From NCBI GenBank assembly GCA_002104905.1, contig MCFE01000757.1, positions 1 to 38,937 on the forward strand: DNA of 38,937 nt. Direction: 5' to 3'. Under the pieces are notes generated by a model. The model did no database searches and was not told the origin of the DNA. It saw nothing but the letters and a program-made list of their open reading frames with translations. Below, piece after piece: positions 5,494 to 7,353 of this stretch (position 1 is its first letter; each line of letters starts with the position of its first letter). Made by a program: the position numbers and the translations under genes. This stretch comes from Basidiobolus meristosporus CBS 931.73 (lineage: Eukaryota > Fungi > Basidiobolomycota).

Positions 5494-5829
5494 ATGGCTC
5501 CTATCAAGAAATCCAAGAAGTCTGTTGAATCCATCAACTCACGCTTGGCCTTGGTCATGAAGAGTGGTAAATCCACCCTTGGCTATAAGTCCACCTTGAA
5601 ATCCATTCGCAACGGAAAGGCCAAGCTCATCATCCTCTCCGGAAACTGCCCTCCTTTGAGAAAGTCCGAGATCGAATACTACGCCATGCTCTCAAAGACC
5701 AGCGTTCATCACTACAACGGCAACAACATCGAGCTTGGTACTGCCTGCGGTAAATACTTCCGTGTTGGCGTCCTTTCCATTACCGATGCCGGTGACTCTG
5801 ATATCCTGAAGACTCAAGAACAACAATAA
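5494..5829 (+). CDS. RPL30: 60S ribosomal protein L30 (eL30)
   Basis: 111 aa with [27 protein letters not shown] and [25 protein letters not shown]; strongly biased codons. Confidence 0.99.
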
Positions 5830-6132: not shown

Positions 6133-7353
6133 TTATTTGAAATAGTTTTCTAGTTGTAGCATACTCACCGCCCAATTGACAGTCTCCGGCGATTTGACGA
6201 CGCCAATGACAACTTCATCTTGATCGTCCAAGTCTATCTGGAGTTCGTTGACCACATATCCGAGTTGGTCTGCATACAATCTTGCGGCATTAAAAACTCT
6301 TACGCGGTGGTCGGTTGTTGTGCCGTCTTCGTTGGCGCATTGGGCATCGGAGTACTCCATTATTTCCGATAGGTCCTCTATTGAATTAATCGAGCTCTGG
6401 TACTTCACTTCTGCATCAGCTACGGGTGTTATCGAGTCCAAAGAGCCTTTAGGGAAACGAAGTATAAATTGTAGACGCTCCCCTGGGGTGTCGAGAAAGA
6501 TCCCGTTCGCGGTACCTTTCCCTTTTGTTAAAACCCCTCCTTTGGAGGCATCATAGATCCAATCGCTCGGGATTGGATGTAATTTGAAGTCGATGTGTAT
6601 TGAGGTCGGGGAGGTTGGTGTTCGGTGGGAGTTTACCCAGGACATTCGATTGGCAAAGCGCGATTGCTTGAGCGTGTTCTTCATCAACGAGAGGGTTTTG
6701 GTTGCAAGAAGACACCCAACGTGCTTGTGCATATCAGCTCGATAGAATGCCCCTTGAGCGACGTAGTTATATCTACCTGAAATTTCGGGCCCATTTAAAT
6801 GTAAGCAAAGTGATGGTTCAAGAGCGGTCGAGAAGCAGTACCATCTTTATAGAGGGCCTCAACAACAGCCCTTCGAGACTGTACGTATTTTCCTTTGCCC
6901 AACTTCTTTCCACCAAGGCCCATATCACACACAACTACGTGTTGGGAAGTCTCAGGAACCTCTGCTTTCACCAAGCGCAGCAAAAAATCTACCCACCCCC
7001 GTCCGTTAGCACCCCATTGAAAGAGTTCACGAAGCCGCTAGATGCTTACCTTTCGGGAGTACTCTTTCGTTGTAAACACACTTGCGTAGCGGAGAGGACA
7101 GCATCTTGACTAATCAAAAGGGGTTTCTGTATCAGTCCAAACGTGCATCGGTACGTTGAGAAGTGTGAAGGAAAAAGCAAGGCAAGGTCCAATTTTTACC
7201 TTGAGCCGTTGATATCAGCTCTCGCTCGAAGTTTGGGAGTAGTTTGTATTCGAAACGTCTCGGCGCAGGCTTTCGCTCCACAAAGCGTGCCTTTCCTGGC
7301 CGGGACTTCAGCTCTCGTAGAAACCTCACCACAGAATATGGCTTCCCTGTCAT
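6133..7353 (-). CDS. Hypothetical ~334-aa protein with YlxR/RnpM(DUF448)-like module; exons 7353-7200, 7109-7050, 6988-6842, 6776-6133
   Basis: Three GT-AG introns (90, 61, 65 nt) join four ORF pieces in frame. Spliced segment PLRKCVYNERVLPKDFLLRLVK...GKKLGKGKY matches the YlxR pattern. The N-terminus is basic and Arg-rich. Confidence 0.8.

Follow-up and report, generated by a model that had tools for sequence, protein, structure and literature searches.

A spliced nuclear gene of Basidiobolus meristosporus with a YlxR domain, probably a diverged bacterial YlxR-L7Ae gene with a mitochondrial role

How does a bacterial RNA-binding domain come to sit in an intron-bearing fungal gene, and what might it do there? 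The question is raised by a gene on contig MCFE01000757.1 of Basidiobolus meristosporus CBS 931.73, of which a stretch of 38,937 nucleotides (the window) was analyzed. The annotated gene occupies exactly positions 6133-7353 of the window, on the minus strand and in four exons, and the hypothetical protein annotated for it, K493DRAFT_390296, is letter for letter the spliced product of 334 amino acids (aa). The locus is an ordinary, intact nuclear gene of unremarkable structure that had already been annotated; what calls for explanation is its protein. A first-pass annotation, drawn from the DNA alone, had seen in it a module like bacterial YlxR (RnpM). Taking the evidence together, we consider the best explanation to be a diverged bacterial YlxR-L7Ae gene whose product would act in mitochondria, in RNA handling or translation, and we give this reading as a whole a probability of roughly 0.68.

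Homology to YlxR is real and lies far beyond chance, as the first-pass annotation had claimed from short motifs. Against the full protein the Pfam YlxR model PF04296.18 scores 26.0 bits (E 8.6e-06) over residues 60-121 and profile positions 1-55 of 75; exon 3 alone retains a match (E 0.017, profile positions 15-53 of 75), and the precomputed annotation of K493DRAFT_390296 lists PF04296.19, marked "weak". Twelve further members of the fungal family described below match Pfam YlxR, the alignment in each case opening at the P-L-R-x-C motif, profile position 1. The best bacterial model for the Basidiobolus protein is the NCBIfam RnpM equivalog NF047356 (E 6.6e-06, 26.1 bits, below its cutoff of 80), and the alphaproteobacterial two-domain model PRK09190 (NF006622) gives E 0.031 and 13.7 bits, below its cutoff of 184. 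Across the family, PRK09190 is matched by 8 of 20 members and RnpM by 5 of 20 (E 0.1 or better). Residues that are hallmarks of the domain are kept almost without exception among 20 family members: R60, G102, and Y/W106 in all 20, C62 in 19, and G104 in 18.

The strongest sequence evidence comes from comparing profiles. Alphaproteobacterial proteins were collected through a DNA pattern for LPGRGxWVT, which yielded at least 120 loci, 102 proteins, and 56 nonredundant sequences, scoring 66-81 bits to PF04296 where scanned. This pattern proved almost diagnostic for the alphaproteobacterial YlxR-L7Ae-like gene that lies between nusA and infB, nearly all of the loci being in Alphaproteobacteria. 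Aligned with hhalign, the 20-sequence fungal alignment and the 56 bacterial proteins matched over 91 columns (residues 56-153) with a probability of 97.8, E 8.8e-13, and a score of 90.8, while 20 column-shuffled profiles and one reversed profile, run as controls, scored at most 20.3 with a best E of 0.046. Over the same 91 columns the Basidiobolus protein is about 26% identical to the bacterial proteins.

Structure points the same way. An AlphaFold2 (AF2) model built from the 20-sequence fungal alignment reached a predicted local distance difference test score (pLDDT) of 82 and a predicted template modeling score of 0.81, where the two Basidiobolus sequences alone had given a pLDDT of 31. By region, the pLDDT was below 50 for residues 1-24, 77-92 for residues 31-60, and 90-95 in the YlxR region, with residues 31-55 modeled confidently as helices. 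The first-pass annotation had proposed a structural comparison with YlxR, and the outcome agreed with it in two independent searches: Foldseek against 350,542 PDB chains ranked 1G2R, the only solved YlxR structure, first (probability 1.00, template modeling [TM] score 0.60 by target, root-mean-square deviation 2.9 over 80 columns), and VIA, which does not depend on Foldseek, ranked it first of 48,161 chains (Z 7.8) with 93 of its 94 residues aligned. A resemblance by chance, or by convergence of short motifs in an unrelated fungal protein, might be suspected from a Pfam score marginally below threshold and from profile searches that came back blank against PDB sequences. We regard it as highly improbable and rejected it, on the hhalign E of 8.8e-13 set against 0.046 or worse in all 21 control profiles, on the two first places of 1G2R, and on hallmark residues R60, G102, and Y/W106 that are invariant across the family.

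What, then, is the remainder of the protein? Its C-terminal sequence of about 200 aa had been taken for an extra segment fused to the module. That description did not survive: the segment matches an L7Ae-like second domain that bacterial homologues already possess. Our AF2 model and the Atlas model both superpose on Pseudomonadota clusters annotated with YlxR plus Ribosomal_L7Ae (219-237 aa), with TM scores of 0.63-0.70 by target and 186 aligned residues that span positions 34-334, and the significant hhalign stretch itself does not stop with the YlxR domain but takes in the first helix of the one that follows. In a wide PDB search, residues 141-334 aligned with members of the L7Ae superfamily, namely SBP2 (Z 4.8), Gadd45a (3.3), Snu13 (3.2), L30e (3.2), and B. 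subtilis YlxQ (3.1), and also with 6agb_C and 6ahr_C (Z 3.4), the C chains of RNase P complexes from yeast and human. The bacterial counterparts have weak Pfam L7Ae matches of their own (E 0.0011-0.16). Neither exon 4 nor the whole Basidiobolus protein matched PF01248 at E up to 10, and in the Atlas no match came up for the C-terminal domain, looked up by features, or for the Mesorhizobium protein. The fungal domain carries insertions at about residues 172-200 and 229-259 and lacks the bacterial ARKAG...G..KV stretch. As modeled, the second domain appears to be a degenerate L7Ae-like domain whose likeness to L7Ae is structural only, and kink-turn binding should not be assumed for it.

This two-domain layout bears directly on descent. 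L7Ae proteins with an upstream YlxR domain have been described in Alphaproteobacteria and other phyla (Yutin et al., PMC3353972), and in Mesorhizobium the bacterial gene lies in the order rimP-nusA-ylxR-infB. Because the layout of the fungal protein matches that of the alphaproteobacterial YlxR-L7Ae protein encoded between nusA and infB, we read the gene as being of bacterial descent. This origin would be ancient and plausibly endosymbiotic, in keeping with the endosymbiotic origin put forward by the first-pass annotation, and the source may have been alphaproteobacterial. The fungal gene does not stand in a nusA-infB context; its neighbors are a 563-aa gene and RPL30.

Is the gene peculiar to Basidiobolus? 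Searched exhaustively, 1.84 billion representatives yielded 23 matches at E 0.001 or better, and all 20 whose source was looked up are fungal. They spread over four fungal phyla, Zoopagomycota, Mucoromycota, Glomeromycota, and Basidiomycota, with members in Funneliformis, Acaulospora, Diversispora, Dentiscutata, and Paraglomus (Glomeromycota); in Mucorales, Umbelopsis, Calcarisporiella, Mortierellaceae, and Syncephalis; and in Punctularia, Grifola, Mycena, Fibroporia, and a microbotryomycete (Basidiomycota). Among the members scanned, the Basidiobolus protein is the closest to bacterial YlxR. That Basidiobolus recently acquired ylxR from a bacterium by horizontal transfer, which would account for the presence of a domain that is overwhelmingly bacterial, is very unlikely: homology among the members runs full length across fungal phyla, C-terminal motifs included, which rules such a transfer out, and fungal distribution and full-length homology together effectively refute it. 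The three spliceosomal introns of the Basidiobolus gene and the low identity to bacterial proteins (only about 26%) also speak against it, as does the fact that pattern and tblastn searches of 185,579 genomes found no close bacterial relative of the domain.

Some of the models recovered have unusual architectures. In certain Glomeromycota models (Funneliformis, 646 aa; Paraglomus, 799 aa) the family domain sits at the C-terminus of a far longer protein, and two members of the match set carry an additional domain each, cytochrome P450 in one and protein kinase in the other. These long proteins and domain combinations are probably merged gene models, not true fusions.

A clue to function came from the ascomycete side. 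The first-pass annotation had suspected an overlap with Rrg8-like proteins, and several indirect lines of comparison favor it. By features, the nearest Atlas cluster (score 0.95, 225 of 256) is ascomycete and carries the RRG8 domain PF17068; by structure, the protein aligns with RRG8-bearing clusters at a TM score of 0.60 over 242-245 residues (0.51 for the C-terminal domain alone). PF17068.12 is precomputed on four family members. One member (P0017) matches YlxR (residues 82-149) and RRG8 (residues 60-145, E 0.0034, 17.2 bits, cutoff 27) over the same residues, and a second (P0021) matches PF17068 at E 0.12. A word-index protein search brought up mainly Umbelopsis proteins for the family alignment, and for the P0017 domain nothing but P0017. 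Judged through clusters and profiles, the family probably includes the RRG8 family of Ascomycota, with yeast Rrg8 (YPR116W) among its members. Yeast Rrg8 is mitochondrial by green fluorescent protein tagging, and its deletion abolishes mitochondrial translation after cytoduction, with loss of mitochondrial DNA (mtDNA) (PMC2768984); the gene has been grouped with those for mitochondrial translation and RNA maturation (PMC7453639). In the literature searched, RRG8, known since 2009, is given no molecular function, and we found no link of YlxR/DUF448 to mitochondria or to Rrg8.

The N-terminus fits a mitochondrial destination. The first 30 residues of the Basidiobolus leader, which is disordered in the model, hold 9 R/K and 2 D/E, and leaders across the family are likewise basic and poor in acidic residues (3-9 R/K and 0-3 D/E among residues 1-30). 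The Arg/Lys-rich, presequence-like N-terminus pointed out by the first-pass annotation is thus common to family members, and from its composition we infer that it serves as a mitochondrial presequence. Because of the yeast Rrg8 phenotype and these family-wide basic leaders, we further infer that the product is an RNA-binding protein of the mitochondrial matrix on which expression of the organelle's genes depends. In this view, an information-processing gene of bacterial descent, probably that of the mitochondrial endosymbiont, would have been transferred to the nucleus, where it acquired introns and a leader and diverged; its product would be imported into mitochondria, where the conserved basic surface of the YlxR domain may bind structured mitochondrial RNA and so support mitochondrial gene expression. 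The support of gene expression through RNA binding is proposed because translation is lost in yeast rrg8 mutants.

Which RNA might be bound? The first-pass annotation had proposed a mitochondrial cofactor of RNase P or of RNA processing. In its specific form this would be a true mitochondrial RnpM, bound to the bacterial-type RNase P RNA that fungal mtDNA encodes and influencing how the 5' ends of mitochondrial transfer RNAs (tRNAs) are processed. There is something to be said for it: the RnpM equivalog is the best bacterial model for the Basidiobolus protein, RnpM of B. subtilis binds RNase P RNA (shown only in bacteria; PMC10853771), rnpB is encoded in zygomycete mtDNAs such as those of Rhizopus, Mortierella, and Smittium (PMC3630166), and in yeast, where the RNase P RNA is encoded in mitochondria, the loss of mitochondrial translation on rrg8 deletion is what a defect in tRNA processing would be expected to cause. 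We nevertheless judge it unlikely. The equivalog match reaches 26 bits where the cutoff is 80, and the type of the bacterial ancestor is the two-domain nusA-infB protein. When co-occurrence with mitochondrial rnpB, which the first-pass annotation had put forward as a check, was followed through published tables, the family turned out to be kept where rnpB was not found: five Glomeromycota genera keep it, and the tabulated Glomus and Gigaspora mtDNAs have no rnpB (PMC3630166, Table 1); Agaricomycetes keep it, and basidiomycete rnpB, in a survey of 38 dikaryan mtDNAs (PMC3942027), occurs only in Schizophyllum commune, Ustilago maydis, and Microbotryum lychnidis-dioicae. The RNase P idea is weakened because this phyletic pattern argues against strict dependence on mitochondrial rnpB. 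Nothing in the literature searched linked Basidiobolus mtDNA with rnpB.

The yeast rrg8 phenotype agrees better with a general function in mitochondrial RNA handling or translation than with a role in RNase P, and ribosomal RNA or ribosome assembly intermediates are somewhat more likely partners than mitochondrial RNase P RNA. A broader form of the RNase P proposal, with the whole RRG8 family including yeast Rrg8 descending from the endosymbiont nusA-infB YlxR(RnpM)-L7Ae gene and still acting as an RnpM-type RNase P partner wherever mitochondrial rnpB is kept, seems to us doubtful to the same degree; if true, this would be the first case in eukaryotes of an RNase P modulator that descends from bacteria.

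Several observations weigh against a mitochondrial YlxR-L7Ae descendant and have to be set beside the evidence for it. The Pfam YlxR score of 26.0 bits falls just below the gathering cutoff of 26.9 for PF04296.18, and HMMER profiles of the fungal family did not find 1G2R among PDB sequences. Past residue 153, the comparison of the fungal with the bacterial C-terminal domain is not significant in hhalign (E 0.4), the alignment being collinear, and the matches to the L7Ae fold, with Z scores of 3-5, are weak and in a range that unrelated folds can reach. The Basidiobolus protein itself has no PF17068 match in a Pfam scan, and its leader holds two acidic residues.

The gene model on which these comparisons depend can be followed exon by exon on the minus strand. 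Exon 1 (7200-7353) encodes residues 1-52, with the ATG at 7353-7351, and comprises the basic, presequence-like N-terminus (residues 1 to about 30) and the conserved short helices (residues 31-55) before the YlxR core. It is followed by intron 1 (7110-7199; 90 nucleotides, GTAAAA...TTAG, phase 1), which if left unspliced brings an in-frame stop just upstream of exon 2. Exon 2 (7050-7109; residues 52-72) opens the YlxR domain with the P-L-R-x-C motif. Intron 2 (6989-7049; 61 nucleotides, GTAAGC...GCTAAC...TAG, phase 1) separates it from exon 3 (6842-6988; residues 72-121), which holds the core of the domain with its FLLRL, VxD, and G-K-G-K-Y motifs. After intron 3 (6777-6841; 65 nucleotides, GTACTG...TTCAG, phase 1) comes exon 4 (6133-6776; residues 121-334 and the stop at 6135-6133), with the end of the YlxR-homologous part, then a long helix as linker, and, as modeled, the degenerate L7Ae-like domain at the C-terminus, including its lineage-specific insertions. 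Homology to bacterial YlxR, extending over the first L7Ae-like helix and supported by hhalign and 1G2R, covers 6679-7098 (residues 56-153), with introns 2 and 3 inside this region.

The peptides quoted by the first-pass annotation are present in the sequence and are joined across GT..AG introns: PLRKCVYNERVLPK lies on exon 2 (7109-7050), and DFLLRLVK...GKKLGKGKYV on exon 3 (6988-6842). The same annotation had spread the YlxR module over three exons. This stands for the full homologous region (residues 56-153), which reaches exon 4; the Pfam match (residues 60-121) lies on exons 2 and 3, and the gene itself has four exons.

For the splice model the evidence is comparative, and at the level of protein alignment it supports the junctions. 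The B. ranarum ortholog, 63% identical, gave tblastn high-scoring segment pairs at 7113-7051, 6989-6840, and 6777-6136, which end at the borders of exons 2, 3, and 4 and alternate in frame; the distant orthologs of Calcarisporiella and Syncephalis gave the same three segments. For exon 1, profile positions 22-51 come from this exon only and are matched by orthologs of other phyla: the Glomeromycota, Basidiomycota, and Mortierella orthologs of the exhaustive HMMER search begin to align at profile positions 22-28, for which exon 1 is the only source. An extra intron at a GTGAGT donor (6163-6168, minus strand), 10 codons before the stop, was considered and rejected: the C-terminus is conserved family-wide, and because it ends where the family ends, this GTGAGT is not taken to be a used donor. 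The model of the B. ranarum ortholog, K7432_012975, is without the N-terminus encoded by exon 1, begins MFAGFF..., and bears the UniRef name "Ribosomal protein L9"; the model is probably truncated and the name misleading.

Of the genes nearby, ribosomal protein L30e (RPL30, Pfam Ribosomal_L7Ae) is an intronless open reading frame of 111 aa at 5494-5829 on the plus strand, convergent with the YlxR-like gene, the two 3' ends being some 300 bp apart. It looks like coincidence that an L7Ae-family gene adjoins one whose product has an L7Ae-like domain. The other annotated neighbors are a GFO_IDH_MocA oxidoreductase, a Pkr1 homologue, the 563-aa gene, which lies upstream and has no Pfam matches, and, beyond RPL30, a polysaccharide deacetylase. 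None of the annotated neighbors is tied to mitochondrial RNA metabolism.

Part of this was on record already: the gene is annotated, public pipelines have attached PF04296 to it, and the families concerned are known. The reading of the RRG8 family as proteins of bacterial descent that join YlxR to an L7Ae-like domain is one that we did not find in the literature searched. Were it true, Rrg8 would become a testable mitochondrial RNA-binding factor, giving a concrete hypothesis for an uncharacterized yeast gene, and the set of genes from the bacterial rimP-nusA-ylxR-infB information-processing cluster that can be followed into mitochondria would grow by one. Standing nearer to the bacterial domain than any other fungal member scanned, the Basidiobolus protein offers a useful bridge here.

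Set beside the closest known systems, the fungal protein shares with the bacterial YlxR-L7Ae protein (PRK09190) domain order, overall shape, a collinear order of elements in the C-terminal domain, and the motifs R-x-C, [LI]-R-F, V-P-D, and G-[RK]-G-x-[WY]-V. Unlike the bacterial protein, it is encoded by a nuclear gene with three introns, it carries an N-terminal leader and about 25 conserved extra residues, and its second domain has insertions and no detectable sequence similarity. In contrast to the L7Ae/L30e/eS12/Gadd45 superfamily, its C-terminal domain has extra beta hairpins and no Pfam match. With B. subtilis RnpM/YlxR and S. pneumoniae YlxR (1G2R) it has in common the fold (24-28% identity) and the N-terminal and GRG-type motifs, and it is expected, like them, to use a basic surface for RNA binding, whereas those proteins are stand-alone, of about 90 aa, and without a second domain. 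Compared with the RRG8 clusters, the Basidiobolus protein differs in lacking a PF17068 match, and by analogy with yeast Rrg8 the fungal family is likely to have the same role in mitochondrial gene expression.

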